The notes under the pieces are model-generated. The model was not told the DNA's origin. It made no database searches and saw nothing but the letters and a program-made list of their open reading frames with translations. From Monocercomonoides exilis PA203 (taxonomy: Eukaryota > Protista > Preaxostyla): a stretch of 64,000 bases of DNA. Made by a program: the position numbers and the translations under genes. Positions 25,004 to 64,000 of the stretch are shown here, one piece after another (position 1 is the first letter of the stretch; every line of letters starts with the position of its first letter). Where the stretch lies: contig LSRY02000017.1 of the NCBI GenBank assembly GCA_001643675.2, positions 496,001-560,000 on the forward strand. The letters are read 5' to 3'.

Positions 25004-28000
25004 ATGGTGAGGTGCTCCACCAACATGAAAGCTGCATTCCGTTTTGCTACATTGTTGTTGCTTGTTGTCCACAGCTGCAGCTGCAGAGGCATTGAAGAAA
25101 GACAAATTCAACAAATATGCGATGAGGAGATGCCAAAAGTCGAGATCAACATTTCAGACGAAAAAGGAACGAATAGCAATATTTATTCGATTCGAAGGGA
25201 AGTGATCGGGAATGCAGCTGGCAACCGGCTGTGTTGTGCTGAAACAAGTCTTGTAATCGTCAACAGCTCGTTGTGCGTGAGCCGCCTCACCATGGTGCCT
25301 CTCAGCGGCTTTGCGTTTGTCACTGCCCACAAGCGCTCAGCTGCCACCATTCTCTCCTCTGCCTGCCAAATCCACACACACCACAATCACAATCACAAGC
25401 ACCACCCACTCTTCCTCTCTGCACACAGCTCCCTCTCACTCACGAACTTCTCCCTCCTCATCCCTCAACCGGCCATCCTCTCCTTCCCCTTCTTCTCCAC
25501 CCCAAATTATCTCTTCTCTTCTTCCCACTCCACAATCCCTGCCTCCTTCTTCATCTCCCACTCCTCTTTCTCCTCTTTCGTCCCCCTCCACCAGCCCTTC
25601 CTTTTTTCCCCTTCTTCCTCTCTCCACCCCCAAATCCGCCTCAATCTCCATCTCTCAAGCACGCTCTTCTCCAACATCTCTTCTCTCTCACCACATTTAA
25701 CACGAACACCATTTTCCTCATACTCACCCAATCCATTCTCCACCACAACCACAACCATAACAAACAACGCACACAACTCATTCGCCACAACCACTTCCAT
25801 TTCCAACGCCATGTCAATCCCCTCCTTCTCCATTCGCTCATGCCTCTCTATCCACTCAACTCTCTTCCACCACACCCACAACCCCATCGATGGTTCCATT
25901 CTCCCCTCACTCAACAGCCCATCCACTTCTCTCTCTGCCGTCAACACATCTTTCCTTCGCCAAACACGATCTTCTCCAAATGTTCCAATTGTATATGTTG
26001 GAATTGAAACAGACAGAAAGAGACCAGATAGATTGGATTCGTTTGATGAGAACAGCCATAAATTTGAATGGTGCGAATGGAATGGTTCAACTGGTGGATC
26101 AAATCATGGAGGTGCACTTTATGTTGTTTGCACAAATGCAAATCTTGCAATCACATCTTGTTCGTTTTTCAATTGTTCAAGTGGTGATCATGGCGGAGCG
26201 TTATACTGTAATCGTTCGTTGAAGTTAAACATCTTAAAATCAAATTTCACAAGCTGTACAGCTGCTCATGCAGGAGCAGCTTATGTTGGATATCCACAGT
26301 CTAATTCTGCTTATTCATTCCCAGAAAACAGAGTGGAAAGTTGTTCAATAACAAGCGGAATTGGAAGTGGTTGGTATTTTGCTCTAGCAAATAATCAAAC
26401 AAATTTTCAATTCTTGTTTTCCAAATGCAAGAGTATCTCAAATTCCGGTGGAGATTCAGCTGGCGCTCTTTTATTGGATTGGCCTCCACAAAATAAACCA
26501 AATCAATTTTTGATTGATGATTGCCAATTCATAAATAACAAATTAACAAGTTCATCAGCTTTCAATGGTGGCGCTGGGCTGTGCTGCACAACCACTTTCA
26601 CTTGGATGAGCGGGTTCAAATTCATCACATTTTGTTTCTTCGATGGCAACACTGCAACTAATGGCAGGGGAAATGATGTGTTCTTCAATGGCAATGCAAT
26701 CACTCAATCTCCATTTGAGAATTGTGGATCAACAACCCCAGCTAAAAGAGTGTGGAATAGCAATACAGCTGACAATGCAGTGTACAATGGCTGGCTTCCA
26801 ATCATCAACCAGAACAAAATCGTAGCAAACAACGGGGAAGATATCGATGCCTGTGGCAAAACACAACAAAGCCCATGTGCTACAGTGGAGTATGCCCTTA
26901 GATGCGTTGCTCCCTTCAGCAATGCCTCCCTCTCTCTTCTCATCTCCACTTTCACTCCCACAAAGACTCTCACATTCCGTGCCCCAAATACAAAAATCAC
27001 TGGAAATGGCACAACTACCACAACTATCGCCTCCAGTGGCATTCCCCAACCAACTTCTTCCTCTCCATCATTTTTATCATCCTCTTCACCAGATCCATCT
27101 GCCTCGTCTGCCCTCTTTGCACAAACTCAGGGCTCCCTCACAGTCTCTGCCCTCGCCATCGCCCACAACTCCACTAATCCCATTACCCCCATCCTCTTCC
27201 ACCTCTCCCAAAACTCCCCTTCCCTCAACCTCAATACAACCACCATCACTGGAGTTGCCTCCAATTCAATAAAAACACCCATCTTCTTCCTCACTGCTGG
27301 CTCCCTCGCCCTCAACCACACAGCAATCACAAAACTCATCCTCAACAACCCCAGCATCTTCCATCTCACCTCCCTCATCGCTCCCCTCACCCTCAACTCC
27401 TCCAACATCACCGACATCACCTCCACATCTACCCCCGCAAGCTGTGTCCTCTCCTCTACCACCTCCCCTGTCCTCACTCTCTCCATCACCAACTGCACCA
27501 TGAACAACATCAGCTCATCACAGCTGAACCAACAGGCTGTCACCAATGGAGGATGCATCTCATTCGCCTCATCTGCCTCTGACAATGCATTTTCGGTGAG
27601 CAACGCCACGTTCTCCAGCTGTTGTGTGAGCGAGGATGCGAGTTCCGGAGGAAGAGGCGGAGGGATATATCTGGATTGCAGCCTGAATGAAGAAGGATTT
27701 CAGCTTTCATCAATATCGTTTTCTGGGTGCAGGGCAACAGTCGGGAAGAACATTTTTGTGAAAAGCAGCAATTTGATGAATTGTGTGAATACAGAGCGTT
27801 TTGCAATTGTTAACACAGATTACGTGGAGGATGGAAATGCATTTGTTGGAGAAGATGCGATTTATGGAGAAATGGATCTCCGAGTGTTTCTTGTATCTAT
27901 GAAGTGGATAGTTGTGTCTGTGTCGAAGGATGGGCACGACACATTGGGATGTGGAAGTGAAATATTCCCATGCAAATCACTGAAAAGTGGAATTGACCAC

Positions 28001-31000
28001 ATTGACAGAAGTGAGACAGAAGGAGAAAGGAAAGTGAATGTGAGAGATGAAGGGACAATTGAAGATATTAATTCATTCACAGATACACTTGTGATTGATG
28101 GGTGCTTGAATGAGGATGATGCCATTAAACACAGGCCAATTCATTTTGAAGGGACTATTAATGGAGATTCTGCAGCAACTTCATCTGTTATTTCATCAGC
28201 AGTTTCACTCAGTTTGTATTCTTTAAAGTTACAGATCCCAAGTCAATTTGAGCCAAACATGAATTCGTTGATCTCATCGAGTGGGATTCTTCAACTCAAA
28301 AACTGTTCATTTGAAAACCAATCATCAGATATCATTCAATACTCGTTGATAACCACAACAAGTGGGAGTTGCACATTGAAAGGATGTAGTTTGGTAGATT
28401 CTTCATTTATCATTTCACCACTGGTGATGGCTTCTTCTATTTTGCTTGAAAACAGCAATTTTTCAAATATTGTCAACACAGTCAGCAAAGAAGGAGGCGT
28501 TGCAAAAGTGACATTGAAAGAGAATGAAAAGCTGGAGATCAAATCGACAAATGTTTCATCTTGTTCACTTTTAACAACAAATGGAAAAGGAGGGTTCTTG
28601 TATTTGGATTGTCAAAATTGTTTGAATGAAACACCATTTCTTTTGGAAGGTGTAACGTTTGATAGCAACAAAGCAGATATTGGAAAGAATATGTTCATTT
28701 TGGGAAAGGATTTCAACATTTCCGTAACGAATGACTCATTCAAGTTTGATTATTCATCAATGAAGGATGATGGTAACTTATTTGTTGGAAGTGATGATTT
28801 TCATCAAGAAAAGGATTTATTCATGTTTTTGAGTCCATTCAGCTCAACTGAGATATTTATCTCATCGAATGGATTTGATGTGTCACGTTGTGGAAGTGAA
28901 GAAGAGCCATGCTTCACAATGTGGAAAGGGATGGAAAACATGAAAGAGGGAGATGAAATGAAAACAATACAAATTGAAGGATCAACAATTATTCGAGATT
29001 CATTCAATGTTTCCAATTATCAGATCAAAAAGAATGTGAAGATGGGAGAAGAGAATGTGAAAGCGATATTGAATTTTGAAAAGGCAACTGATAGTCAGCT
29101 AGAATATTTCATAGAAAATGATATTCACCTTGAATTGTCCAACATCCAACTTCAACTGTCAACTGGATTTGACAATTCGGACAAAACGATTATTTCAAAC
29201 AAAAATGGAGCTTTGGTGATAACTGGATGTTCATTCCATTCAGAAGCAGGAGTGAACAATGGATTAGATTGCGTATTTGTGGATGCGATTGGAGGAAGTG
29301 TGGAAGTGGATGATTTGTCGATTGAATCGTGCAATGTTGGAAACAGTATTTTTGTCATTCATGATTCTGGAATTACTTGCCATTTTGTGAATGTTCGAGT
29401 GGATTCGTTAAATGAAAGCGGCGGACGCATTTTATCAATCAAGAAATCTGAATCAGGATTGAAGATAAATGAAGTGGGTGAGGAAATGAGTCTCAACATT
29501 GATAATTCGTCATTTTCAGGAGTGAAGAGAAGTGACAATGGAGCGAGCATTTTGGAATCAAAGAGTGAGAATAAGATTTGTTTGGTTGTGAATGAGAGCA
29601 ACTTTGCAGAAGACAAAGCAGAATTGAGTGAAAAAGGAGGGGCGATATTCTTCACATTGGGTGCATCTGGATCAATGAAAATGATTGACTCAACAATCAG
29701 CCATTGCAGCTGCAGCGACAGCACGGGAAGAGGAGGAGGGGTGTATTTGGCAACAAAGGAAAGAGGAGAATTGGATTTCACATTTATGGGAATGAAGTTC
29801 AGTGCTAACACAGCAAGAGTGGGGGATGACATTTTCATTGAATGTTTCAACATCTTATCCCAGATCAACGAAAGCCAATTTCGATTTGATCTTCGAGAAG
29901 GCCATTACACCAGAATTAATGCGATATATGGAAGAGACGAATGTGATTATCCAATCGATACGGATCTGATTGATTTTGTGACGATCCATCAGAGCGACAC
30001 AATAATTGTGAGCAGTGTGAATGGATCGAATGAGAGGCAATGTGGAACAAACACACTTCCATGTACTTCGATTGATTATGGACTGATGCATCTGACTTCA
30101 GATTTCATGAGTCTGATGTTCATTGTTGAGGAGAGCGTGATTGGTGATGAGGTGAATCTGAAGGAGATGAGTTTGAGTTCGAAGAACAGAGAGATGTGCA
30201 AAGTTAAAGTGAAATCAAACATTGAAAAAACAAGAGAGACATTGATGACAACAGCAGGAACAGTTTCATTGCTGAGAGTGAACTTTGTGTTTGATTCGAA
30301 TTTCAATTCTCGACATGATTCACTGATATCACCAGAGGGAGGGATTCTTGAAATAATGAATTGTTCATTCACCTCAAAACAATCGGCGGATGGAGAAAAT
30401 GCTGATTTTGCAAACATTCCATTTCACATCATTAATATGGCAAAAGGAGAATTACAACTTGATGGATGCATAGCATCAAATCTTATTCTTCAAGAATCTA
30501 CATTATATCTTTCATCACCACTCCCATCAGTCATTGATTCATTAACGATTTGCAATTCAACAATTTCAAAACCTCTATTAGATATTAATGAATTCGGTCA
30601 ATTGAATATGGACAGATTGAAGGTTGAAAATATCACAGTTGAAGGAAATGAAGAATCATTGATATCTTGCCTGTCAATGAAAAAGACAATGCAGTTAACG
30701 AATTGCACAATGGGTAAAGTCAGTTCAAAGACTACAAAAGGTAAATTGATGAAATTGGAGAATTGCACAGATGTGAAAATGGACAGTTGCATTTTTGATG
30801 GGAGCGCAAAGGAAAGAAATGAAAAGAATTTGAATGCAGGAGAAGATGAGATGTGCAAATGGAATGGATCTCTTGTGGATATTGCGAAGAGTTCTGTGAT
30901 GACGAAAGACACAACAATCTCGAATTCACCAGAAGGAGGAATAACAATGAGTGGAGGGGCATTGACCGTTAATGATGGAAGATTTGAGAACAATAATCCA

Positions 31001-32854
31001 TCAATTGAAGGATATCCATCACTGAGAAGAAACATCATATGTTCTGATTCAGGAACATTGAATGTGATGAGTTTGAAAGGAGGAGATGGATTGGAGAGAA
31101 ACACATCACTTTGGATGTTGAATGATGGTTGCAACTTTGAAGGGATTGCTTCTGAGAGAGGTTCATCATTTTTCATTCCTGTATTAGAGAGTGTGGAAGC
31201 AAAAGAAGAGACAGATAGAATGAAGCTGACATTCAAAGGATTGCTTCTTGTTCCATGCAATTTGTCATTCTCAATTGTGAAGAGAAAGGGAGAAGAGAAA
31301 GAGATTGAAAAATACATGTTTGACGGAAATGGATTCTTATCAGAAAAAGAAGCAGAAGGAAGTGCAACAAATGATCTCCTCAGTAGCTGTGGAGACGAAA
31401 TAGAAGTTAGTGTATGCATCCTCTTTGGCAATGCAGAGTCTCCTTCCTCAACAAATCCATTCATTCTGAAGAATGTGAGCGAAACAAAGGAAAACGGAAA
31501 TGAAAGGATTGTTGAAGGAGGAGAAGAACGAAAATCATTTTGGCCGGTCATTGTAATTGCTCTTGTTGTAGTTTTATTGATTGTGCTCATTGTTTCAATA
31601 ATATTGGCTGTTCGATGGAGAAAGCAAAAGAGAAGGACAAAGGAATTGGAGGAGATTGTGAATGATAACATCAGAAAGGATCCGAAGGCGTTTGAGATGG
31701 TGACGATGGATATGTCGCCTGAGGAGCAGTGGAGGAAAGCAGAAAGGGAGGCAGAGAAGAAGAATGATGAAAGGATCAAGAAGAGGGTGTATGAGAAAAG
31801 TTTGGGACACTCGAAGTCATCAGAGCATCTTCTCTCTGAGAGTGGTTCAACAGAATACATTTTGGGGAGAGATTCAGACAAGATTCCTCAATGGGCACTG
31901 GAGAAAGATGAGGAAGAGGAGGATGATACAAGAAAGAGAACACCTTCACCTTCCATTTCGTCTATTTCATCCACTACAACAACTGATTCGGATTCAACAT
32001 TTGTTCAATCAGAAAGTCTGTGCCCCACCACCTCATCGATGTCGAACTTGGTGGATGCAATGGCCTGCTCATCTCCACACGAAAAGTTGATTGTGGATCT
32101 GAGGGATTCGCTGTTCATGCTGTTGCACGTAAGTAACGAGAAGAAAGAGATGGCTATTGGAAGCTTGAAGGAGAGGGAGCAGACAGCTTCCCAAATCCTG
32201 TTCTGGGTGGCCAATTTGGCACTCCACTCGTTTGACGAAATGGAAAACCCACTCCAATCCCTGACCAATCTCAGCCCCCACATTGTGTTGTTATCAGAGC
32301 ATATGGTCATCTGCATTGTGATGCACTCAGATCTTTTATCAGATGACTCAGAATCATCTTCCATCTCTTCATCGACTGTTGTGACATCTGCAAGTGATGA
32401 TGAGGAGGAGGAAGACTCTCTTCCTTCATCAGCGTTTGAGGATGAGAACGATTTCAAAAAAGAGTGTCTGAGGTGGAAGGCGCCAGAGCTTTTGATGAAC
32501 AAGAAGATGGGAGCAACAAAGAAGTCGGTGGTGTTTTCGATTGGGATGATGGCGTGGGAGTGTCTGACGCTTCAGATCCCGTTTGGGGAGTATCCGACAG
32601 AGGTGGCTGGGTCTAAGATTGTGAATGGGGAGAGACCTACATTGGAGGAGTTACAAGCAAACTCATATTTTGAAACCATCAAGAATTGCATTTCTTCATC
32701 AGCAGAAGACCGTCCGTCGCTCACGCAACTGAAGCGTGAGTTCATAAAGCGCTTTCCAGCAGAGATGGTGATTGTAACTATGTCAGATGCAATTGATTTA
32801 GAAAATTCCTCTGAAGAAAAGGAACTGAAAAAAAAGTGGACCTACCAAAATTGA
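25004..32854 (+). CDS. Giant intronless type-I membrane protein (2616 aa): signal peptide, repeated pectin-lyase-like beta-helix modules, TM, degenerate kinase-like tail
   Basis: Signal-like FATLLLLVVHSCSC. GGAL/GGGI/GGAI and FxxN motifs and four V-S-x-x-G-x-D/N...CG....PC caps. TM WPVIVIALVVVLLIVLIVSIILAV followed by RWRK. Kinase C-lobe motifs RWKAPELL, VFSIGMMAWECLT, IPF, GERP, RPSL. Confidence 0.88.
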   Translation: MVRCSTNMKAAFRFATLLLLVVHSCSCRGIEERQIQQICDEEMPKVEINISDEKGTNSNIYSIRREVIGNAAGNRLCCAETSLVIVNSSLCVSRLTMVPLSGFAFVTAHKRSAATILSSACQIHTHHNHNHKHHPLFLSAHSSLSLTNFSLLIPQPAILSFPFFSTPNYLFSSSHSTIPASFFISHSSFSSFVPLHQPFLFSPSSSLHPQIRLNLHLSSTLFSNISSLSPHLTRTPFSSYSPNPFSTTTTTITNNAHNSFATTTSISNAMSIPSFSIRSCLSIHSTLFHHTHNPIDGSILPSLNSPSTSLSAVNTSFLRQTRSSPNVPIVYVGIETDRKRPDRLDSFDENSHKFEWCEWNGSTGGSNHGGALYVVCTNANLAITSCSFFNCSSGDHGGALYCNRSLKLNILKSNFTSCTAAHAGAAYVGYPQSNSAYSFPENRVESCSITSGIGSGWYFALANNQTNFQFLFSKCKSISNSGGDSAGALLLDWPPQNKPNQFLIDDCQFINNKLTSSSAFNGGAGLCCTTTFTWMSGFKFITFCFFDGNTATNGRGNDVFFNGNAITQSPFENCGSTTPAKRVWNSNTADNAVYNGWLPIINQNKIVANNGEDIDACGKTQQSPCATVEYALRCVAPFSNASLSLLISTFTPTKTLTFRAPNTKITGNGTTTTTIASSGIPQPTSSSPSFLSSSSPDPSASSALFAQTQGSLTVSALAIAHNSTNPITPILFHLSQNSPSLNLNTTTITGVASNSIKTPIFFLTAGSLALNHTAITKLILNNPSIFHLTSLIAPLTLNSSNITDITSTSTPASCVLSSTTSPVLTLSITNCTMNNISSSQLNQQAVTNGGCISFASSASDNAFSVSNATFSSCCVSEDASSGGRGGGIYLDCSLNEEGFQLSSISFSGCRATVGKNIFVKSSNLMNCVNTERFAIVNTDYVEDGNAFVGEDAIYGEMDLRVFLVSMKWIVVSVSKDGHDTLGCGSEIFPCKSLKSGIDHIDRSETEGERKVNVRDEGTIEDINSFTDTLVIDGCLNEDDAIKHRPIHFEGTINGDSAATSSVISSAVSLSLYSLKLQIPSQFEPNMNSLISSSGILQLKNCSFENQSSDIIQYSLITTTSGSCTLKGCSLVDSSFIISPLVMASSILLENSNFSNIVNTVSKEGGVAKVTLKENEKLEIKSTNVSSCSLLTTNGKGGFLYLDCQNCLNETPFLLEGVTFDSNKADIGKNMFILGKDFNISVTNDSFKFDYSSMKDDGNLFVGSDDFHQEKDLFMFLSPFSSTEIFISSNGFDVSRCGSEEEPCFTMWKGMENMKEGDEMKTIQIEGSTIIRDSFNVSNYQIKKNVKMGEENVKAILNFEKATDSQLEYFIENDIHLELSNIQLQLSTGFDNSDKTIISNKNGALVITGCSFHSEAGVNNGLDCVFVDAIGGSVEVDDLSIESCNVGNSIFVIHDSGITCHFVNVRVDSLNESGGRILSIKKSESGLKINEVGEEMSLNIDNSSFSGVKRSDNGASILESKSENKICLVVNESNFAEDKAELSEKGGAIFFTLGASGSMKMIDSTISHCSCSDSTGRGGGVYLATKERGELDFTFMGMKFSANTARVGDDIFIECFNILSQINESQFRFDLREGHYTRINAIYGRDECDYPIDTDLIDFVTIHQSDTIIVSSVNGSNERQCGTNTLPCTSIDYGLMHLTSDFMSLMFIVEESVIGDEVNLKEMSLSSKNREMCKVKVKSNIEKTRETLMTTAGTVSLLRVNFVFDSNFNSRHDSLISPEGGILEIMNCSFTSKQSADGENADFANIPFHIINMAKGELQLDGCIASNLILQESTLYLSSPLPSVIDSLTICNSTISKPLLDINEFGQLNMDRLKVENITVEGNEESLISCLSMKKTMQLTNCTMGKVSSKTTKGKLMKLENCTDVKMDSCIFDGSAKERNEKNLNAGEDEMCKWNGSLVDIAKSSVMTKDTTISNSPEGGITMSGGALTVNDGRFENNNPSIEGYPSLRRNIICSDSGTLNVMSLKGGDGLERNTSLWMLNDGCNFEGIASERGSSFFIPVLESVEAKEETDRMKLTFKGLLLVPCNLSFSIVKRKGEEKEIEKYMFDGNGFLSEKEAEGSATNDLLSSCGDEIEVSVCILFGNAESPSSTNPFILKNVSETKENGNERIVEGGEERKSFWPVIVIALVVVLLIVLIVSIILAVRWRKQKRRTKELEEIVNDNIRKDPKAFEMVTMDMSPEEQWRKAEREAEKKNDERIKKRVYEKSLGHSKSSEHLLSESGSTEYILGRDSDKIPQWALEKDEEEEDDTRKRTPSPSISSISSTTTTDSDSTFVQSESLCPTTSSMSNLVDAMACSSPHEKLIVDLRDSLFMLLHVSNEKKEMAIGSLKEREQTASQILFWVANLALHSFDEMENPLQSLTNLSPHIVLLSEHMVICIVMHSDLLSDDSESSSISSSTVVTSASDDEEEEDSLPSSAFEDENDFKKECLRWKAPELLMNKKMGATKKSVVFSIGMMAWECLTLQIPFGEYPTEVAGSKIVNGERPTLEELQANSYFETIKNCISSSAEDRPSLTQLKREFIKRFPAEMVIVTMSDAIDLENSSEEKELKKKWTYQN

Positions 32855-33299
32855 TGAATAAGGGAAAAAAACATGGGAGAATGCCGCACAATGAAAAATC
32901 CAACAATAAATAAGGTGAATCATTTCGATGAATAAATGTATTTTAGCAGCTGTGAAAGGTATTTCTTTCTTCAGATTCTTTGAATGAAGCAGAATAAAAG
33001 GTTTTTTTTTGTTGATATGTATTCCGTGTAAAGTTGTATTTTATTTTTATTATGTTTTTGAATGAAGCTCACAAAATTTCATCTGTCTTGATTGAGCTCA
33101 AAGATTATTTAATGCAAACAATAGTTGATATGAATTCTTGACTTAACGATTTTTCTATCAATTTCATTTCACAATTTTTCATAGAAACACTCGCAAAAGA
33201 GCTGTCATTTTGTTTTTGAGACGTTGCAAGTTCATCATTGTTTTTGAATGTCTATATGAATTTATTAATTCATTCGGTTTTATTCACAATTCGTAAATA

Positions 33300-33456
33300 G
33301 TTTTTTTATTTTTTTTATTTTTATTTTTATTTTTTTTTTTTTTTTTTTTTTTTTTGTTATGTGTGTGCGTGTGTATGTATGTATGTATGTATGTGTATGT
33401 GTATGTGTATGTGTGTGTATGTGTATGTGTGTATGTGTATGTATGTGTGTGTGTTT
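33300..33456. repeat. T-tract followed by a (TGTA)/(TGTGTA)n microsatellite
   Basis: Read directly; source of the spurious THTHTY ORF. Confidence 0.9.
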
Positions 33457-33786
33457 GTTGGACGAATTTATATTTATAAGTTTTCAATTATCAAGATATG
33501 AAATGTTTTCGTGTTGAAATTATTTCGAATTTTTATCGTTTGCGCTGTTAATTGCTCTTTCAAAGGAAATTCTTCATTTTTCAACAGTTTATTCTCAAAT
33601 AAAAATCAAAAATGAAATGTAAAATGTCTTATCCTTTTGTCTATTGAAAAAATGCTTTCTTTTTTTCAAAAACTTAAGTTGGATATCTTTCTCGCAAAAC
33701 CAATTAATCAGAAATATTAAATGTTATATGTCATAAATTACTGAAATTTTATTGCATAAAATAGAAAAGAAGGAATAAAGAATAAT

Positions 33787-33820
<34 letters not shown>

Positions 33821-33875
33821 TTTTGTGGATAATTAGATCAGATATTTACGTAATATAATTTTTTGTAAAAATTTT

Positions 33876-36800: not shown

Positions 36801-36926
36801 CCCTGCGGCTGTCGTTCTTCGCAAATCGCAGCACTTGAAGAAGAGCTGGATAGAATGAACTTTGAAAAGAAAATGTGGGATGAAGCTTTGAATGCTTACA
36901 AGATGCAAAAACAAGCAAATAGTTGA
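33876..36926 (+). CDS. Glucosidase II beta subunit (PRKCSH-like), multi-exon, with large insertions
   Basis: Signal peptide MIWGFLIAFLL. FKCFD...INDDFCDCADCSDEPGTSA...DGICDCCDGSDE...CKNTC. C-terminal MRH end VHIVCG...VTEVAPCTYEAIVESPCGC. Confidence 0.85.
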
Positions 36927-37836
36927 ATAATTGCGTAACATCAATTGTAATAATTACACGTCATGATTTTGTATTCTTTTGTAAGTTATTTTTACATTGT
37001 TTAATTTCTAAGTTTTGTTTAAATCGAATAACTATTGCGTTTCATGATCGTGGAATTCGTTTTTCTAAGTACTATGAACCTTCATAAGAAAGAATAAAAA
37101 CTCCACCCCGAACAACGCATGTTGCTTGAGATGGTTAAGCGAGGGAGAAAAGGATAGAAACTTGTGTCGGCAAGTGGGAGAAAAAACTGAAAAAATGACA
37201 TAACTTAGCTAAATAAAACCAACAAATCTACACGAAATTAAGATAAAACTAATCCGAAATTTGATCCAATAAATGAAAGCGTATTTAAAAAAATGCACAA
37301 ATACACCAGGACAGATGGACAGAGAGAAAAAACAAAAAATCAGCATTAACAAATGGATCATGAATTACTTAAAATCAATAAAACAAAAATGGAAAAAGAA
37401 ACAAAAGAATTTTATAATTATTTTTTATTTATCAAATAAACCGAAAACCATAAACATCAAAACGAAAAATTACAAACGAAAAAGGTAATAACAAAACTAT
37501 AAATCATTTAAATACTAATATTAAAAGAAAAAACACTTTGCAATATCACCAATATTAAATTCCGCAAATTTTGCGCACAAATATCTCCAATCGATTAATT
37601 GGCACCTTAACAATAACAGGTCCGCACACAGGAACAAACATCATCAGTGGAATTGCTTTATTCAAGCAACATTTTGTAATTGGGCCAGCTACGAAATACA
37701 CAAAGGCACTGAGCCAAAAAAAAAGCCAAATCGCTCAATCATCGTCCAAATGGATAGCTCAATCACATTTTCTATGAGAAAAAGCATAACGATTATGCTT
37801 CCAATAATATCAATAACACCCCTTTTCATCGACTGC

Positions 37837-51642: not shown

Positions 51643-51678
<36 letters not shown>

Positions 51679-53648: not shown

Positions 53649-54468
53649 TTATGATTCTCCTGAACGAACTGCCATGAGTCGATTATCTAATTCCGATGGA
53701 TGTTCCTCAGTTTTGGCAGGTTCAGAAATCTGAAAAATTAAATGAAAAATTTAATTGTCTACAATAAACTGAAATATTTAATACTTTTTTTGTGGAAATC
53801 TTTTCAAATGACCCATCAAGTATGGACTGTATAGTTTTTTCAACTTCTGCATCTGCCTCTTCATCAAGATCTTCGTCCATGTCATCCATTGTTTCGGTAA
53901 TCATTTCGTCAACAACTCCAGCCTTAAAATAGATAGATAACATAACTAATTCATTAATAAAATTACAAAAAAAAGCACACCTTCATCATTTCTCGAGAAA
54001 GATCCTGCATTGTCTGAAAAACAAAAACGGAAATTATTGTTCATAAAACATATAAATAAAAACTGCTCAAACTTCTCTCAAAGATGGAAGCTTAAAACAT
54101 TCATTCATATGACCGATGATACCGCTTGCACCTTCGATTGCTTTTGTTGTTCGATAAATTGCGTATTGATGTTGGAGTTCTGATTCAATTGAATCAAGAT
54201 GTGAAGAGGCTGTATATAACCTTTCTCTCGATTTTTTGCTTCGTACAATTTCCTTTGCCAGAACTTTTGCGTTAACATTATCATTTCGTTGCAAGCAATC
54301 TCGAATTTCTCTCTTAACCTTTTGCTCACCATTTTCAATATCACGTATTTGTTTATCTGTTTCTCTCTTTGCTCTTCTAATAGATCGCTTCCATTCTCTA
54401 ATAAGTTCTTTTGGATCGTCTTTTGATTTTTGAAGCTGAGCATCACTTTGAGATGTATTTGGACCCAT
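53649..54468 (-). CDS. VPS24: ESCRT-III subunit Vps24/CHMP3, multi-exon
   Basis: DPKELIREWKRSIRR...AKVLAKEIVRSKK...RLYTAS...MQDLSREMMKAGVVDEMI...EEADAEVEK...LDNRLMAVRS. Confidence 0.92.
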
Positions 54469-54660
54469 TTCGTATAATTAACAATAATTATATACAAGAT
54501 CATAATTCTTCGTTAACATAAAAATAAATATCTTTTTAAAAAAAATGAATAGAATTATTGTATTTGAAGGTTCCATATTGTTTGCTTTCAAACAGAAATA
54601 TTTTCATATTATTATTATGTGCAAAGATCACTTTTTTTGATAGTTATCTCTTTTTGGAAA

Positions 54661-55411
54661 ATGTCAATTGTTGTCAATGAGATCTGCCCACCATTTTCAA
54701 CTTGGTACGGATACTGCGGAGCTGCAGCTGCTATTATCTTTGCTAGTGTGCCTTCAGCATTTTTGTTCAAAAAATAAATTAAATCTTTTTCTTCTAGACC
54801 TTGGATCAGCATATGGAACAGTCACTTCAGGAATGGGAGTATGCTCAATTGGGCCGTCTCATCCAAATATGGTCATGAAAGGAATTGTTCCAACAATTAT
54901 GGCTGGTTTCTTCAAATAATTAAAATTTTAATTAACAAAGTTTCTTAAACCACATTAATACGCAGGTATTTTATGTATTTATGGACTGATTGTAGCAATT
55001 ATTATTAACAGCTCAAGTTTGAATAATCATAATTGAGTATTTAATGTCGAATATAATTTTTTAAAGTAACAAAGGAATATACGTATTTCCAAGGATTTGC
55101 ACATCTCTCAGCCGGACTAATGGCTGGACTTAGTGCCCTTTGCGCGGGTATTGCAATTGGAGTTGTAGGAGAAGCTGGGGTTAGAAGTTATGCAAGAGAA
55201 CCGAAGTTGTTTGTTGGAATGCTTCTTATTCTTATCTTTGGGGAAGCTCTTGCATTATACGGACTTATTGTTGGTTTGATTGTTGGGACAAAGACACCTC
55301 AAAGTTTGTTTTTTCTTTCTTTCGCATTTTATGTTCCATTTTTTTTGCTTCATGATAATTTATATTATCTAATTTTTTTCAATAGATGGATGCGACTTTG
55401 TAAGGGTGTAA
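54661..55411 (+). CDS. V-ATPase V0 proteolipid subunit c (16 kDa), multi-exon
   Basis: [70 protein letters not shown]. Confidence 0.95.
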
Positions 55412-55785
55412 CCGATGACATTTACCAATTCCTTGATTTTTTTCTCATTTCCCACTTCTTTTTGTCAAATCACCTATTCTATCTGAGCTGTTAGTTGAAT
55501 ATTTAATCTAAGAATTATTATCTAACAATTATTTTCTTTATCTTTAAAATTTTTGTTTTGCTTCAACGAAAAAGCATCAAGCAATCAGAAGCAATAGATT
55601 AAACATGCTATGAAAAAGAAATGCTTTTGTGAAATCAGCAAATTTCAAGAAATGAAAGAGTTACAAAGTTTTGCGAGATATCTAAAAACCAAAATATGTA
55701 ATGAAAAGTTCATAAAACGTGAGTGATGGTGATGCAAAGAAAGAAGTGAAGATTTGTAATAGAAAAAAACAATACGTGAAGTAAT

Positions 55786-57386
55786 TTAGCGAGATGATGT
55801 GCCGAATTTGTCGTACCAAGAGTCATCCACCACATTTGAATAGAGCTCATCTTGGGCTTTCTTCCTCCTCCTCGCCTCTTCTGCAGCACGCTTATTCTCT
55901 TCCAAAAGCTGTCTTTCCATTTCTTTCTTCTCTCTTTCCGTTCTACGCTCATGCGCAGCCAAAGTCCTTGCAACAACCTCTGCTTCGTGTTCTTCTGCTT
56001 TTCGTTGTGCTTCTTCGGCTTCCTTTCGCAGCTGTTTTTATAGAAGTCCAAACACAAGAGTCATCAAATATAATCACAATAATAATGATACAGAGATTCA
56101 CAAATATTTAAAGAAAAAAAAGTGAAACAAAAAAAGCAATCCACAAAAATAGTCAACTTCATTTTTCTATTTCATCTTGAACAAACCTTTGCTTCTTCAA
56201 CCTGGTTCTTTTGGATGGCTTTGATTTCTTCGACTTGATCCGGAAGAAGGCCCTTGAAATGATCGGGACGGAATCTTCGAGGATTTTCAGCGGATATTGC
56301 CATCGTCATATCCTCATTCATTTCTCTCGACTTCAGCTCTCTTTCAATCTCATCCATCTCTTGCAGCATTTCTTGATGCTTCTGCTCGTTTGCTCTTTTC
56401 TTTTTCTCTTCAGCCTGTAGACGTTTTGTTTGCAGAAATAAAATGCCATGAACATTCAATTGTCCATGTTCAAACATTGTTTGTTGAATATATGTGACAA
56501 GTTCATAAATACAAAAAACATTCATTCTCAAACCATTCTTTTGTTTTCTTCCCAAATTCCATGAAGCATTTCTTTTCTGGCAAATTGCTCTTCTGCATCT
56601 AACTCTCTTAAACGTCTATCAACTTCTTCTTTTTTCATTTGTTCCAATCTAATTAAAATAATATCAAAAGATGCAAAAAGCAATCAACGCAATAAATAAT
56701 GTTTTTAAACAACTTTAATATACCTTTCCAAAGCTTCTTCATATTTTTTGCGATTTGCCTTTTCTTCCATTTGAGCAAGAGCCCATTCCCTTTGTTGTTC
56801 TCTTTGTCTTTTTTCCCTTTCATCATGGTCAAGATCTTCCCCCTCCATTTTTTGCAAGCCAGATACAGACAGTCTAGGATCATCATCGCCAACCTGAAAA
56901 TAATTAATGTTCATTTTTTAAAAACAAATGAAGGACAAAATATTTTTTTGAAAAAATAAATTGAATTGTTTTTTGATTGAACAAATTTTTTAAAACAAAA
57001 TTTGAAACCCTTGCAGGCAGTGACATTGCAGCTTCTGCTTCTGGGCTGAGGTCGTATTCTCTTCTTGTAGTTTTCTGTTGTTGAGTTTTATAAAAATTCA
57101 GAAGTTCTGCTCTTGCCTCCTCTCTTTCACGTTGAACTTGTGCTTCCATCTCCATAAGCTTTTTATCTGCTGCAAGCATTTCAGCTTCCAATGCAAGTTC
57201 TCGTGCCTTTTCATCTTCAATCCGTTTTTTCTTTTCTTCAATCTGTTTTTGTAAACCCTCATAATCCTGCCCAATAGTCCTCCATTTTACATCGAATATT
57301 CTCTTTTTCCTTTCTTCTTCTTGCCTTCTTCGACGCTCAACATCGCGAGCAATCTTATCTTCCTTCAATTCCGTGACAGGCAACAT
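55786..57386 (-). CDS. RIB43A: RIB43A-like axonemal microtubule inner protein, multi-exon
   Basis: ERRRRQEEERKKRIFD..RTIG, RREYDL, PARVGDDDPRLSVSGLQKMEGEDL, RFRPDHFKGL; ends KFGTSSR. Confidence 0.9.
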
Positions 57387-57445
57387 TATTTTAAACGGTT
57401 GTGATATTTGATCGTACTTCCCATTCACTTTTCTGTCAATAAAAA
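57387..57445. promoter_or_regulatory. Putative 59-bp bidirectional promoter region with a central GATC
   Basis: Spacer between the inferred ATGs of RIB43A (-) and UMP1-like (+); GATC at 57410-57413. Confidence 0.5.
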
Positions 57446-58080
57446 ATGAGTGTTTGCTTCCTCTTCATTTTTGGCTATGTTTATTAAGATTTATTTGCTT
57501 GCTTCTAGTTCGAAACAGTAGCACCTTTAAGTGAGACAAAATATTTGTTTAAACTTCCAACTCGCGATGTTGTTTTCTCCGAGGAAATATCAGAGGGTTG
57601 CAGTTCTCCAAAGGAATTACAACTTCCTCGAGTTGTACCCGTTGGAGAAACAAAAGTCATTGGGGTCATTCCAGCACTTGAAGATTTTCAAAAAAAGGCA
57701 CCAGCAGCAAAAGTTGAATTTTTAAAGAAACGAGAAGCTGCTCCTTCCTTTGGAGTAATGCACCAACAGGTGTTGCAACAAGAGCAAAAATTGATGGAAA
57801 GATTTTCTGCTCCAGAACTTAAACTCACTTCAGATTTTGTTATTTCAATGTGCGAAAAATCACATAAAATGTCACATTTCTCTGCTAATCCTTCAATTGA
57901 GACATATCTTGACAACGATGATGAAATTACATGGGCAGATATATATGATGGTTTGTTTCTTTTCATTTTTTGAATTAATTGTAATCTAACAATTTAATAA
58001 AAGAACCATGCGTTGTTGGGCCGAAGATCGTTAATCCAAGGAAAATTTTTGAAAAAACCATGCTTGATGACGATGTTTAA
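57446..58080 (+). CDS. Proteasome maturation factor UMP1/POMP-like (3 exons; first coding exon only 4 nt)
   Basis: ATG A|GT...AG|TA GCA restores the frame into ORF 57545. C-terminal PSIETYLDNDDEITWADIYD...NPRKIFEKTM resembles the UMP1 pattern. Confidence 0.6.
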
Positions 58081-58929
58081 TTTATCAGAGCATTTCATTC
58101 TCTTCTTGTTTTTTTAAAATTTTTACAGTTGTGAAAAGAAAAATCAGATTTATTCATAATAGTATATGATTTTTTGTTGATTTTCACACAAGAGAAAAGA
58201 AAAGCAGATCAAAATGCAAACATTTGGGGTAGAGTTCTTGCATTGATGGAAAAAACAAAGACTTGACCCAATAATTTTTTGCAATTAGATAATTATAAGT
58301 CTTGCATTCTCATTCAAAAAAATCAAGAAAAATACAACAATTTCGAATAAAATAAAAAAATAATGTGAGGAGCATAATTCAAAAAGCAATAAATTAAGTC
58401 CATTTAGGTATTCTTTTAATTTTTATTTTTGTTGATTGAAAACTTCAAGTTAGATGCTTCTATTATTGGTTTTTGTGAATTGTTAAAATAAATTTGAATT
58501 TTAACGTTAACAAGAATCAGTTGCATTATGCTGACTGATGCTTTAATAATCATATAAACTTATAACTTAAACATGCATACATGAATATTTCAAAAATCAA
58601 ACATACATCAAACAAAAGTTGCTAGAGAATGAGCAAAGCAAACATAAAGAATATGATGTGGTATTGGGAATGAATAATAACAAAACGTAAAAAAATAGAT
58701 AAAACATTTGTTGAACATTACTCTACATTCGAATATTTTATTGAATAATTACAAAAATGTCAAAATACATGAACCTAATAATGACTCAGTGCAGACAAAT
58801 GGAAAGCAAAGTTATTAGGTTTAAAAAAAATGTTGTTGATTATAAATTTCGAATAAAATATATAAAAGCTAAAATGATAGAAGAAGCTTTTGTGTATTAT
58901 GAATCATGTATCATTCACCATATATTCCT

Positions 58930-61900
58930 TTACAAATTTGATCTAGAGCAAGATGCAAGGCGTCGTAGCTCGGAAACATTAAGATTCGAATCTTCATCGT
59001 AGGTGATTGCATCCGAAACCGTGAATATCACAGTGCCAGACGGAAAATGCTGGAAAAACTCCCGCTTCATCCCAATCAGCGTCGGCCTGGCTTTCTTGTC
59101 CTCTGAAAGCGCTGCCAGGATCACTTCGTCATACGACGAGCTCACCTTCGAGCAGTTCGGCCTCTCCCCATTCAGAATCTTCTGCCCCGCCACCACTGCC
59201 TCATACTCCCCAAACGGGATCTTCAGCGTCACACACTCCCACAGCATCATCCCAATCGAAAACACAACTGTCTTCTTCGATCCCTGGCTCTTTGTTCCAT
59301 TCAGCAGCTCTGGCGCTTTCCACCTCATGCACTCGTTCTTGCTGTCTTCCTCATCCTCAAACGCAGACGAGGGAAGAGAGTCGCTGTCATCATCATTATC
59401 ACTGGCTGATGTCACAACTGTTGATGAAGAGATGGAAGATGAATCTGAGTCATCAGACAATAAGTCAGAATGCATCACAATGCAGATGACCATGTGCTCT
59501 GAGAACAACACAATGTGTGGACTCAGATTGGAAAGAGATTGAAGAGGGTTTTCCATCTCATCGAAAGAGTGGAGAGCGAGATTAGCCACCCAGAACAGGA
59601 TTTGGGCAGCTGTCTGCTCCCTCTCCTGCAGAGTGCCAATCGCCATCTCTTTTGTCTTGTTCCTTCCATGAAGCAGCATGAATAATGAATCCCTCAAATC
59701 CACAATCAGCTTCTCATGTGGAGATGAACAGGCCATTGCATCCACCAGATTCGACATTGATGATGTGGTTGGACACAAATCTTCACCTCGAACAAATGTG
59801 GATTCTGTGTCTGATGTGTCGGTGGTTGAAGTGGAAGAAATGGAAGGTGATGGCGTTCGCTTCCTTGTCTCTTCTTCCTCAACCTTCTCCAGCATCCATT
59901 CAGGAATCTTGTCTGAATCTCTCCCCAAAATGTATTCTGTTGAACCACTCTCAGAGAGAAGATGCTCTGATGACTCTGAGTGCTTTATATTCGTCTCATA
60001 TATTCTCTTCTTTATCCTCTCTTCATTCTTCCTTTCTGCCTCTCTCTCTGCTCTCCTCCACTGCTCCTCAGGTGACATCTCCATCGTCACCATCTCAAAT
60101 GCCTTCGGATCCTTTTTCACTGTGTCTTCCACAATGATTTCCAATTCCTCTGTTCTTCTCTTTTGTTTTCTCCATCGAACTGCCAAAACAACAGATACAA
60201 TGAGCACAATCAATAAAACTACAACAAGAGCAATTACAATGACCGGCCAAAATGTTTTTCGTTCTTCTCCTCCTTCAACAAGTCTTCCTTCTCCATTTGT
60301 CTGAAGTTTGCTCCTGTTTTTCAGAATAATTTCTTCGGTTGAATAAGAAGAGAACTCATTTTTGAATAAAATGGAAACAGACACTTCTGTCTCTTCAGAT
60401 GCAGATGCAACCATAGAAAATGGAATATAACCCAACACATTTTTCTCAGATAAAAATCCAGATTCAGTAAATTGATATTTTTCAATCATATCCACCTCCC
60501 CAATTCTCGATATGATCTGGAAAGACAGATCGCAAGGTAGAAGAAGTTCTCCATTGAAAGTCAGTTTCATTTTTCCTCCAAATTCTTCTGTAGAAACCGA
60601 ATGCAACTTCGAAATAAAGAATGGAGACGGTCTTTCTGCTGCAATTCCATAAATCTTGCATCCTTCATTGAGTATCCACAACGAAGTTCTTGCATTTAAT
60701 CCATCTCCTCCATTCAAACTTATTACATTAAATACACCTGAATTGGAGCATAAAATATTTCTTCGAATTGAAGGATAATTATGAATTGACGGATTGTTGT
60801 CGAAGAATTTTCCTTCTGAAATAGAAATGTTCCCACCAAAAATTGATAATCCACCATTTGGAGATTTTGAAATAATTGAGTTATTTAAGGATACAAAGCA
60901 GCTAGCAAAATCAACTAGTGAAGTATTCCATTTGCAAATATTTTTCTCTTCAAAATTTTTTTGCGGGATTTGATCACTTTCTTTTGATAAATTTCCTTCA
61001 AACTGACATGATTTGATATTCACAGTCGAGCAATTTGAGAGCATTACCAAACTTCCAAGCTTCTTTCCACCAGAAGAGGAACTAGAAACAGTGCAATTGT
61101 TCATCCCCAGTCTGCTCCACTTTGAGCGGCACTCAAAGAAAGACGATGAATCCAGCGAAGTGACATTAACCAGATCTACTAGAGAAAATTCAAATTCAAA
61201 TGCAGATGCAGTTGAAAACGAAGATTCGCAGTTTATTTTCGCTTGTGTCTCAAAAACATCGTAACCAATCTCAAATAAAGACCCACAACACGCAGTGCTG
61301 TTGGAGGCTGTTAGCTTTTCGACTGAACCACACATGCTCTTCAGAAAGATTGCGCTTTTTGATGTATTGACATTTTCCAGTTTTGCATCAAACATAACCA
61401 ATCTTCCATCTTCGCATTCCATAATTCTTGAGCAATGCAAATCTTTCATTAATATTTTTTCCAAAGAGAGCTCGCTTCTGGCATCAGAAATGAGAATGAC
61501 AGAATCGAAAACGCTTCCTGCTTCTCCGCAAAATTTACATAAGTTATATGAGCTTCTTCCAGACACAGTGGAAAACAACACTGTATGAAACGCTCTGTAA
61601 TCAGCCGGAAGAATAAAACAGAGCCCTTCAAAAGCCACATCGTCGCCAACACTCACCACCCATTCGCGAGTCTTGCTCAGGATAGTTCTGAATGTCACAT
61701 TTGCCATCTCTCTAGAAATTGACTTCATTTCCATCCCGCCAATTTCGCATTCCCTCTCGATTTCGCTCTCCACATCCACAAGCAGCCTCGACCCGAAGTC
61801 TATGATAAGATGTTCTAACCCACATCCCACTGTAACACATGGCTGCTCCACCTTTCCACATTGTCTCCCCTTCGTCCCGTTCTTCTCCTCCGCAGACGAC

Positions 61901-64000
61901 ACAACGATCGTGCTCTGCTGGTAGATCGTCACATACTCAATCAGATCCACCGGCACATAGTTCTCCTCGTCGATCCCGTAGATCGCATCAAACCGATTGT
62001 ACACTTCTGGCCTCAGATCCAGGACAAATTGTGTTTCGTTAATCTGCTCTGCAATCTTCTTGCACTCCACAAATATGTCTCTCCCTTTCCATGCTCCGTT
62101 CCCTTTGAACTCACACTTTTTGAACACAAAGTCCAGCGCTCCCTGCCCCTCCGCCTTCATATACACCCCGCCGCCCCTCCCAGCTTTGGGTGAGCACAAG
62201 CAGTTCGTGATTTTGTTGTTATTCATCTCATACCGACAGTTCGCCCCTAGCACATACATCATCACTCCCCCCGCCTCTGACATCTCCGACCGGGACATAT
62301 CAAACACACTGCTGTTGATCTTCATCACCAGCACACTTGCCGATGTGTCTGTGAACACACTCGACCCGTTGTACCACGACATCACTCGACGGAATGAACT
62401 CCCGTTTATTTCCACACTTGGAACCTCGTTGCCTCCTGCCCTTGCCCCAGCTCCATCCGCATAGCTCACAATCCCCTCGTTCGCTGTCACATTCGCCAGA
62501 TCCACCCCATTCATCGCACAGCTGCACCCTCCCCACACCTCCACCAGCGCCCTTTCAAAGTTCAGCCCTACTGCTTCAAAGTCAGTCAGCGCCATCAATC
62601 CGCCATGTACAGCAACAAACGTCATACCTGAGAAGTGAGCCGAGCTGCTTGCTGCCAACGAGCACCCTTCAACAGTCAGCGACCCACCATGACTCCAAAT
62701 CACAACCCCCGACGCATCCTCCAGCGTTCCATCCAGGAACAGATCAACCCCTGTGAACGAGAGGCTCCACCAATTCGCAAACAGCCCCTCGCTCAATCCT
62801 GCACCCCCAGGCTTCTGCAGAACAAGCAACGCTCTTGCTGCTTCTCCTGACCCTGAAGGCGCTGCTCCAACCGAGCAGTTCGACAGATCGCATTCATCTT
62901 CCACAGCCAAAGAGCCTACAAGATACACTTTTTTTGCTTCTATATTCTCCTCGAGATGACTCAGCCCCTTCCAGAATGTTCGACACGGATCGTCCTCTGA
63001 CCCACACCTCATCACATCGCTTCCTGCACTCGAAACGAAAATCGTACTCGACAAAAACCGAATCAGGAAGCGAAACAGGTCTGTATTCTCAAACTGGCTA
63101 TCTGTACCGGCAAACACATTCCCATCGCTGCTCAGCCCCGAATAGTTAAACTCGAATGCTGCACCTGTGATAGTCGTGTTCAGCGCCTTTGCTTTGACGA
63201 AAAGACTCTTCCCAGCAAAGGCCTTGTTGTTGTCAAACGTCGCATCCTTGAACTTCAGCGGCTGGGTTCCATCAGCCAGCACACTGTCGACAAATAGGAA
63301 CCCTCCTCTCCCTGACGCTTCTGAGCACTTGCACGAGTCCATCACACACCCCTCCACCAGCAGCACCTGCCCCGCTGACAGATGGCATGCCACACACCCG
63401 CCTTCCATGCTGCTCGCTGCTTCCACTCCCATAAACTGGCAGCGAGTGGCCGAAAATCCTGAAGCAATCGCTAGCGGAACTGCACCAAACTTCTGCGGCT
63501 CAAACGAGCACAAGCTCATCCAAACTGTCCCTCCATTCGAATGGATCAGATAATACGTGCATTCTGCATTCATTGTTAAAGAAGAAGAAGAAGAAGGAAA
63601 AACAAAAGAGAAGGAACAGTTAGAGAGAGTCAGCCCTTCTTCTTGTGAAGAAGCAGACTGAAGCAGCCCAGCTTGCCCAGAAGTGAACAAAAGAGGCAGA
63701 GAAAACCCAATCCGCTCAAGCCTCAGATTCCCCTTGTTCAGCAAGACAGCCTCAGACACTCTACCCAAAATGGCTGCGCAAACACCAACCGTGCATTTAC
63801 TCGCTTCATCTGCAGATGCCACCGAAAAGGATGTCAGCTCGTGCCAATGGTCAACCAACGCTTCCGACTTAATTGTCAGGCTCTTGCGCACAGCATCAGT
63901 CTGGATGTTTCTCAGCCCTCTCCACAGCGAACAGCACGGGTAGCTCTCACTTCCACACCCAACCATGTCATATCCGCTTGGAGAGACAACAATCGCAGGC
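58930..64000 (-). CDS. Second giant beta-helix/TM/pseudokinase receptor-like protein, paralog of 25004-32854; 5' end lies beyond the window
   Basis: The frame stays open to the window edge (PAIVVSPSGYDMVGCG). It has the same module order as paralog 1 and a near-identical TM and cytoplasmic region. Confidence 0.88.
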   Translation of the reverse strand, partial: PAIVVSPSGYDMVGCGSESYPCCSLWRGLRNIQTDAVRKSLTIKSEALVDHWHELTSFSVASADEASKCTVGVCAAILGRVSEAVLLNKGNLRLERIGFSLPLLFTSGQAGLLQSASSQEEGLTLSNCSFSFVFPSSSSSLTMNAECTYYLIHSNGGTVWMSLCSFEPQKFGAVPLAIASGFSATRCQFMGVEAASSMEGGCVACHLSAGQVLLVEGCVMDSCKCSEASGRGGFLFVDSVLADGTQPLKFKDATFDNNKAFAGKSLFVKAKALNTTITGAAFEFNYSGLSSDGNVFAGTDSQFENTDLFRFLIRFLSSTIFVSSAGSDVMRCGSEDDPCRTFWKGLSHLEENIEAKKVYLVGSLAVEDECDLSNCSVGAAPSGSGEAARALLVLQKPGGAGLSEGLFANWWSLSFTGVDLFLDGTLEDASGVVIWSHGGSLTVEGCSLAASSSAHFSGMTFVAVHGGLMALTDFEAVGLNFERALVEVWGGCSCAMNGVDLANVTANEGIVSYADGAGARAGGNEVPSVEINGSSFRRVMSWYNGSSVFTDTSASVLVMKINSSVFDMSRSEMSEAGGVMMYVLGANCRYEMNNNKITNCLCSPKAGRGGGVYMKAEGQGALDFVFKKCEFKGNGAWKGRDIFVECKKIAEQINETQFVLDLRPEVYNRFDAIYGIDEENYVPVDLIEYVTIYQQSTIVVSSAEEKNGTKGRQCGKVEQPCVTVGCGLEHLIIDFGSRLLVDVESEIERECEIGGMEMKSISREMANVTFRTILSKTREWVVSVGDDVAFEGLCFILPADYRAFHTVLFSTVSGRSSYNLCKFCGEAGSVFDSVILISDARSELSLEKILMKDLHCSRIMECEDGRLVMFDAKLENVNTSKSAIFLKSMCGSVEKLTASNSTACCGSLFEIGYDVFETQAKINCESSFSTASAFEFEFSLVDLVNVTSLDSSSFFECRSKWSRLGMNNCTVSSSSSGGKKLGSLVMLSNCSTVNIKSCQFEGNLSKESDQIPQKNFEEKNICKWNTSLVDFASCFVSLNNSIISKSPNGGLSIFGGNISISEGKFFDNNPSIHNYPSIRRNILCSNSGVFNVISLNGGDGLNARTSLWILNEGCKIYGIAAERPSPFFISKLHSVSTEEFGGKMKLTFNGELLLPCDLSFQIISRIGEVDMIEKYQFTESGFLSEKNVLGYIPFSMVASASEETEVSVSILFKNEFSSYSTEEIILKNRSKLQTNGEGRLVEGGEERKTFWPVIVIALVVVLLIVLIVSVVLAVRWRKQKRRTEELEIIVEDTVKKDPKAFEMVTMEMSPEEQWRRAEREAERKNEERIKKRIYETNIKHSESSEHLLSESGSTEYILGRDSDKIPEWMLEKVEEEETRKRTPSPSISSTSTTDTSDTESTFVRGEDLCPTTSSMSNLVDAMACSSPHEKLIVDLRDSLFMLLHGRNKTKEMAIGTLQEREQTAAQILFWVANLALHSFDEMENPLQSLSNLSPHIVLFSEHMVICIVMHSDLLSDDSDSSSISSSTVVTSASDNDDDSDSLPSSAFEDEEDSKNECMRWKAPELLNGTKSQGSKKTVVFSIGMMLWECVTLKIPFGEYEAVVAGQKILNGERPNCSKVSSSYDEVILAALSEDKKARPTLIGMKREFFQHFPSGTVIFTVSDAITYDEDSNLNVSELRRLASCSRSNL

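Follow-up and report, generated by a model that had tools for sequence, protein, structure and literature searches.

Tandem beta-helix proteins with a truncated kinase tail: a probable surface-protein family of some 950 members in Monocercomonoides exilis

A 64,000-nucleotide stretch of the genome of Monocercomonoides exilis PA203 (assembly GCA_001643675.2, contig LSRY02000017.1, positions 496,001 to 560,000; hereafter the window) raises the question of what is encoded by two giant open reading frames (ORFs) whose relatives are publicly described as kinases. Gene A (public model MONOS_600) occupies 25004-32854 on the forward strand as a single uninterrupted ORF of 2616 residues, and gene B lies on the reverse strand at 58930-64000. 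Both frames are present as described in a first-pass annotation, which had taken them for paralogous giant receptors with variable ectodomains on a conserved transmembrane and pseudokinase tail: A is whole and B runs off the window end. The extent given for B required correction, as 8.5 kb of extra sequence shows the frame continuing to window-equivalent position 68757; the full ORF has 3275 residues, about twice the in-window part of 1689 C-terminal codons. The analysis presented here makes it reasonably probable that A and B belong to an oxymonad-specific family, with about 950 copies in M. exilis, of type-I beta-helix surface proteins carried on a dead-kinase scaffold with a presumptive docking role.

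The two proteins share one architecture, as had been proposed. All six conserved strings quoted in the first-pass annotation recur in both, in the same order, and BLASTP aligns A with B at 44% identity over 1706 residues. When the proteins are split at the GGEERK motif, identity is 32% between the ectodomains and 76% between the tails, while sliding-window identity runs from 0.13 to 0.6 outside and from 0.78 to 0.90 between the transmembrane helix and the APE motif. Divergence is strongly non-uniform, and the description of loosely similar ectodomains on conserved tails is upheld. The common layout comprises a signal peptide, 5-7 tandem right-handed beta-helix modules, a stalk, one transmembrane helix and a tail of about 413 residues; the extramembrane parts hold 42-46 N-glycosylation sequons and 69-111 cysteines. 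Both proteins begin with a hydrophobic, signal-peptide-like segment (25004-25090 in gene A, read from the translation), and the transmembrane helix of gene A, 25 hydrophobic residues long (31538-31612), also a helix in the structural model, is followed by RWRKQKRR; the transmembrane helix of gene B, read from the translation, lies at 60178-60252. This order of signal-like start, ectodomain, single transmembrane helix and tail, as read from sequence, agrees with a type-I membrane layout.

The ectodomains are organized around a junction domain of about 130 residues that ends in a CG-x(2-9)-PC cap, which opens the next beta-helix. A hidden Markov model (HMM) of this domain finds four copies in A, at 26531-26911, 27614-28006, 28553-28948 and 29696-30097 (independent E-values of 1.9e-32, 8.9e-37, 9.5e-46 and 2e-49, respectively). 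Gene B has six, the fifth and sixth of which fall in the window at 62950-63339 (5.9e-40) and 61807-62211 (2.3e-43), and other members have three to nine. The domains are spaced 320-390 residues apart. Self-BLAST of the ectodomains returned no internal repeats at 1e-3, whereas the junction HMM did detect them.

The fold of the modules was approached through the last 500 extracellular residues of gene A, which were modelled with AlphaFold 2 (AF2) from a 28-sequence alignment. The model (predicted local distance difference test, pLDDT, 79; predicted template modelling score, pTM, 0.73) presents a right-handed parallel beta-helix followed by a beta-sandwich stalk of about 100 residues; the helix, the last of the protein and about 370 residues long, covers 29981-31480 together with the stalk, and its predicted form is three-faced, with about ten or more coils. 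VIA-align matched model residues of about 19-397 best to the A-module of AlgE4 (2pyg; Z 24.6, root-mean-square deviation 3.1 A over 301 residues), and Vag8, PL6 lyases, NosD and phage tailspikes all scored above Z 20. Among ESM Atlas folds the match was to the NosD/Beta_helix cluster (TM-score 0.54-0.60), and language-model features of the modules lie nearest the DUF1565/Chlam_PMP/Beta_helix clusters. Foldseek against the PDB gave weak TM-scores only (0.2-0.33) because the model has two domains; VIA-align resolved the fold. At the level of sequence profiles, Pfam found no match to PF13229, PF07602 or PF05048 in gene A at E up to 1 and did not detect PF02415 (Pmp) there, and motifs of the GGA[LIV][YF] type are few (five in A, five in B). 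PF13229 is recorded for a few paralogs in the public annotation.

Several of the best structural matches are enzymes (the AlgE4 epimerase, PL6 lyases, tailspike depolymerases and GH110, Z 21-24.6), which raises the alternative that the family consists of membrane-anchored carbohydrate-active enzymes, the modules acting as lyases, hydrolases or epimerases to degrade glycans of bacteria or of the host at the surface. However, sequence identity to the matched structures is only 7-12%, and six ectodomain pieces searched with Pfam at E up to 1 yielded nothing relevant and no enzyme family. Tandem strings of 4-9 helices with Pmp/DUF1565 features are, moreover, typical of adhesins, and a family of surface enzymes appears quite unlikely. 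A separate observation concerns the membrane-proximal ectodomain, which at 30900-31480 (residues 292-400 of the aligned 500-residue piece) contains a set of residues invariant across 28 paralogs and is far more conserved than the remaining ectodomain. The invariant residues include a CxW motif, YPSxRRNIxC, GGDG and several cysteines, and may mark a structural or co-receptor site common to the family.

On the other side of the membrane, the tail measures 413-415 residues in A and B (415 in B, at 58933-60177), and only the part from RWKAPE onward matches kinases, at positions of about 160-258 of the PF07714 profile. These matches pass the gathering score in A (32453-32740, E 8.3e-10, profile 163-257) and in B (59065-59352, E 2.8e-06, profile 160-255). 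Profiles of PDB structures place ILK at the top, with TAK1 and BTK, at E of about 5e-6, and hhalign against a real kinase reports a probability of 96% over 84 C-terminal columns only. The APE motif and helices alpha-F to alpha-I (subdomains VIII-XI) are recognizable in the tails. Upstream of APE, neither Pfam at E up to 10 nor hhalign finds any kinase match, and there is no Gly-rich loop, VAIK lysine or alpha-C glutamate; HRD and DFG are absent from the invariant and consensus columns of 30 tails and of a cross-genus alignment. Because nothing upstream of APE matches a kinase even at E 10 and the consensus lacks HRD and DFG, the tail is predicted to be at least catalytically dead. A tentative alignment by eye of LxxLSPHIVLL to the catalytic loop would put an N or an A where the Asp should be. 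The earlier pseudokinase label stands insofar as alignment recovers none of G-loop, VAIK, HRD and DFG, with the qualification that only APE to alpha-I is kinase-like.

Taken at its word, the public label "protein tyrosine and serine/threonine kinase" would instead make these active receptor tyrosine or tyrosine kinase-like (TKL) kinases, and the family was counted among 332 tyrosine kinases in the 2019 genome paper (PMC6759080). A PF07714 match above the gathering score is what such kinases would give, but its confinement to profile positions of about 160-258, the lack of any kinase match upstream of APE, the missing HRD and DFG, and the same truncation in the related oxymonad genus Blattamonas leave active kinases very improbable. 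A PF07714 search of the genome for family members with an intact kinase gave giant ORFs with complete kinase domains, among them open frames of 4400-6900 residues at C52:244016-244684, C23:935922-936590 and C47:332771-333481 (contig:positions in the assembly). The two that were fetched, both smaller, are Ser-rich, low-complexity and cytoplasmic-looking, have no junction domains and are unrelated to the beta-helix family.

The size of the family was estimated with a 30-nucleotide degenerate pattern for the invariant tail motif TEYILGxDSD, allowing one mismatch, over the 82,301,135 bp and 101 contigs of the genome. It matches 949 times (465 + 484), against none (0 + 0) for the reversed control pattern, and the public annotation contains 535 long and 131 short relatives; the proposal of a large repertoire, as opposed to a few copies, is borne out. 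A protein search of the genome gave 1482 first-look candidates. All 93 of these that were scored had E<1e-216 and were free of internal stops, some 81 being contained in ORFs of 2000 residues or more. Members are 2300-4000 residues long. The family is thus real and large and is publicly annotated, but it is mis-described as kinases: in the 2019 paper "protein tyrosine kinases" form the largest gene family, with 332 genes (PMC6759080). A literature search found no paper on the architecture of the family.

Outside M. exilis, a profile search of 1.84 billion representatives returned 107 cluster representatives at E<=1e-30. The relatives from other organisms come from this representative search, the best 120 matches of the homology search being M. 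exilis paralogs. Weaker relatives occur in Blattamonas nauphoetae and in metagenome contigs, with a beta-helix region, a transmembrane helix and a C-lobe-only tail; in one Blattamonas protein PF13229 scores just below its 25.9-bit gathering threshold (E 4.1e-05, 23.7 bits). Since the Blattamonas proteins share these three parts, the layout, including the truncated kinase, appears from sequence comparison to be older than the split between Monocercomonoides and Blattamonas. The logic of a variable outside on a constant inside is known; the combination of tandem beta-helices with a kinase C-lobe remnant is new.

So many copies could also reflect a largely selfish or neutral repeat expansion, spread as transposon cargo or by segmental or inverted duplication, with most copies lacking a cellular role. 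In line with this, near-identical inverted pairs are common, and genes of the tyrosine-kinase family were reported in 2021 to overlap RepeatModeler "unclassified repeats" (PMC8767320). Yet most scored copies keep the long frames given above with tails free of stops, omega (dN/dS, the ratio of nonsynonymous to synonymous divergence) is far below 1 at a dS of about 1, and the layout is kept in Blattamonas. Around gene A, the search for terminal inverted repeats returned only inverted matches between A/T runs, and similarity to other copies is limited to 60-140 nucleotides of the 3' flank. A selfish origin is decidedly unlikely on these grounds. For the gene A locus itself, the idea of transposon cargo was rejected: besides the lack of terminal repeats, no similarity was found among upstream flanks of family copies, and the neighbours are ordinary genes, namely HSP70 and a prolyl-oligopeptidase-family peptidase, with weaker PEMT-like and PRKCSH-like matches.

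As for the arrangement of the copies, tail motifs often form convergent pairs about 5-5.7 kb apart, for example C1:2073(+)/7770(-), C1:75382(+)/81034(-), C1:189334(+)/195015(-) and C6:727144(+)/732093(-). The protein search likewise shows at least nine pairs of equally scoring tails on opposite strands, and inverted duplication looks like a common growth route of the family. Tail motifs also lie at C1:2073-2102 and C1:2630885-2630914, within 2 kb and 700 bp of the ends of this 2.63-Mb contig, which may be either chromosome ends or assembly breaks inside family copies.

Selection was assessed by the Nei-Gojobori method on 406 pairs of 29 paralogs, with dS of about 1 or more in all regions; the tail and proximal-ectodomain analyses cover 29-31 members, and the full-length analysis seven genes. 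The core of the tail, from the juxtamembrane segment to alpha-F/alpha-G (31613-32641 in gene A), has an omega of 0.06-0.15 at dS of about 1. Values rise to 0.21-0.40 in the membrane-proximal 240 codons and to 0.37-0.63 in the distal part of the last helix, and whole ectodomains show 0.31-0.42 where tails give 0.12-0.23. Purifying selection acts strongly on the core tail, and the ectodomain is relaxed. The inside is not constant throughout, however. While the core is conserved as first described, the last 70 or so residues (32642-32851 in gene A) are variable, differing by 58% on average, and the last 80 or so codons have an omega of 0.24-0.39 at dS of about 2.1.

The history of the genes is not uniform along their length. 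Where two genes have the same class of ectodomain, dS is 0.37-0.6 in the ectodomain and higher, at 0.6-0.9, in the tail, whereas in pairs of different classes the ectodomain is saturated and the tail stands at 0.5-0.8. The tree of the proximal ectodomain and that of the tail are mutually incompatible (log-likelihood differences of 4449 and 1178, with approximately unbiased test p values of 2e-10 and 1.6e-4). Distances in the core tail show no correlation with those in the ectodomain (Mantel r 0.05, p 0.28), whereas those of the last 70 or so residues track the ectodomain (r 0.62, p 2e-4). Within one subfamily, dS swings from 0.18 to 1.44 along the gene. A case from contig C22 involves two family members in convergent orientation (980504-984829 and 986567-990892) whose ectodomains differ: they share a 2.9-kb inverted repeat at 99.07% identity, which starts 75 nucleotides before the tail and extends for at least 1.5 kb beyond the stop codons. 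The simplest reading of the dS and tree conflicts, the Mantel contrast and the C22 repeat is that the true history of duplication is preserved in the ectodomain and the C-terminal end and that ectopic gene conversion has overwritten the conserved core. The contrast between a variable outside and a constant inside, which the first-pass annotation had noted, would then originate partly in selection (omega 0.06-0.15 against 0.3-0.6) and partly in ectopic gene conversion of the core tail. Base composition at third codon positions (GC3) is also patchy within A and B, ranging from 0.26 to 0.68 across 150-codon blocks; in gene B it is near 0.5-0.68 over residues 600-2400, against 0.26-0.37 further on. 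This patchiness is compatible with a mosaic origin or with GC-biased gene conversion.

Gene A is represented in RNA libraries. In four RNA-seq runs of one study, 32-34% of sampled gene A words are present, and RNA-library contigs lie exactly on the gene from 25110 on, with none in 24700-25093. Together with the uninterrupted ORF, the lack of joints in the contigs over 24700-30600 agrees with the earlier description of the gene as intronless, and the evidence suggests that it is transcribed. The public model MONOS_600 has 2167 residues and a different N-terminus, and merges with the ORF near residue 418. Its annotated 5' end is probably wrong, since the uninterrupted ORF has a signal-like start and exact RNA-library contigs fall on 25110-25382, 25674-25938 and 26103-26257. 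RNA-library contigs also map on a stretch of low complexity, enriched in S, L, T, P, H and F (residues of about 120-340; 25361-26023), which has a C-rich coding strand, lies between the signal peptide and the first recognizable module, and may be a mucin-like stalk or a degenerate module.

Expression also bears on the alternative that the family is a variant surface antigen system, in which each cell would express one or a few of the roughly 950 genes and switch between them, the tail serving for sorting and as homology for cassette exchange. Giardia, also a metamonad, uses such logic with its variant-specific surface proteins (VSPs), and the huge repertoire, the conserved C-terminal part on a variable ectodomain, the recombining paralogs and the gut habitat would all suit it. 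But a 413-residue tail at an omega of about 0.1 is far beyond the needs of a coat protein, the copies compared share no conserved upstream sequence, and copies are dispersed among housekeeping genes. RNA contigs 95-99% identical to gene A suggest, furthermore, that several close paralogs are expressed in bulk culture, and M. exilis is regarded as a commensal (PMC6759080). A switched antigen system is unlikely in light of these points. A related proposal, about which we are doubtful, is that the conserved core doubles as a recombination handle (about 80% DNA identity over some 950 loci), through which ectopic gene conversion and exchange between inverted repeats would re-pair ectodomain cassettes with tails and loci. 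The outcome would be a recombination-driven, possibly clonally expressed repertoire in which the C-terminal patch provides class-specific output. If true, dead kinases would here form the basis of a protist counterpart to an innate receptor repertoire.

Comparison with known systems helps to define what is distinctive about the family. The Entamoeba histolytica transmembrane kinases (TMKs) likewise form a large family of protist type-I membrane proteins in which variable ectodomains sit on a kinase-like tail, and some of them are predicted to be inactive. They differ in having CXXC/furin-like ectodomains, a full kinase domain and about 90 members, as opposed to beta-helices and about 950. Chlamydia Pmps and the Pmp-like and BspA-like families of Trichomonas vaginalis share with the M. 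exilis family adhesin-type ectodomains of beta-helices or repeats, the GGA(I/L/V)-type motifs being few in A and B, and all are large expansions in mucosal or gut microbes. Chlamydia Pmps, however, are bacterial autotransporters with a beta-barrel anchor, whereas the M. exilis proteins have tandem helices, a eukaryotic transmembrane helix and a long kinase-derived tail; no autotransporter barrel is found at the C-terminus of A or B, which consists of the transmembrane helix and that tail. Giardia VSPs are likewise a metamonad surface family with a variable ectodomain, conserved transmembrane segment and tail, and recombination-driven diversity, but they are small and CXXC-rich with a 5-residue tail, in contrast to members of 2300-4000 residues with a 413-residue tail. 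Comparable to the tail are the pseudokinases of plant receptor-like kinases (RLKs) and the animal proteins ILK, RYK, ROR and PTK7, which are also kinase-derived, without catalytic residues, under selection and presumably docking surfaces. These keep a complete bilobal fold, whereas only APE to alpha-I is detectable in M. exilis, where an acidic, Ser-rich insert occupies the position of the activation segment; the type of ectodomain is also unrelated.

Architecture, copy number, constraint and age together point to a functional surface-protein repertoire with a non-catalytic inner scaffold, and the variant-antigen, surface-enzyme, selfish-expansion and active-kinase alternatives are all less likely than this reading. 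What the data establish directly is the architecture, the fold, the copy number, the selection regime, the mosaic history, the representation in RNA libraries and the occurrence in a second oxymonad genus. Several points nevertheless weigh against the reading. The sample comprised only seven complete and 31 partial members, chosen among those whose tails are most like that of A. In the closest subfamily no 75-codon window has omega >1, and there is no positive evidence of selection for diversity. The RNA evidence consists of contigs from one study, in which DNA carry-over is possible. Polysaccharide lyases and hydrolases are just as typical bearers of the beta-helix fold. Finally, the AF2 model of the tail is unusable (pLDDT 38.6), its secondary-structure pattern being compatible with a C-lobe only, so that a kinase fold upstream of APE is at most conjectural.

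Under the reading of a beta-helix surface repertoire on dead-kinase tails, each member consists of a signal peptide, three to nine homologous beta-helix modules of DUF1565/Pmp-like type, each with its CG..PC cap first, a conserved stalk, a transmembrane helix and a tail of about 413 residues that is a putatively dead remnant of a TKL-type kinase. The string of beta-helices would be exposed at the cell surface and bind extracellular ligands, for instance glycans or bacterial surfaces, as the fold class and the habitat lead us to infer. The tail would act as a docking scaffold, linking ligand engagement to shared cytosolic machinery for adhesion, uptake or signalling. The single common intracellular partner that was originally envisaged for a receptor or adhesion role needs qualifying: because the last 70 or so residues vary with ectodomain class, subfamily-specific outputs are possible, and this patch may give each class an output of its own. 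The family would have grown by duplication, including inverted duplications, while its core tail was continually swapped among paralogs through ectopic gene conversion.

M. exilis is a model eukaryote without mitochondria, and until now "protein tyrosine kinases" has been the only published description of the largest gene family it has. By the present count the family is about three times larger than the 332 genes reported; about 950 copies of some 7.5 kb each would amount to roughly 8-9% of the genome, as estimated from the number of copies and the usual length of their ORFs. If its members are giant beta-helix surface proteins and not kinases, the kinome count of M. exilis changes, and part of its "unclassified repeat" load is explained. 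The family also offers a large natural data set on the interplay of purifying selection and ectopic gene conversion within one gene. It provides a concrete candidate for how a gut flagellate living among bacteria may recognize or hold its partners and prey.

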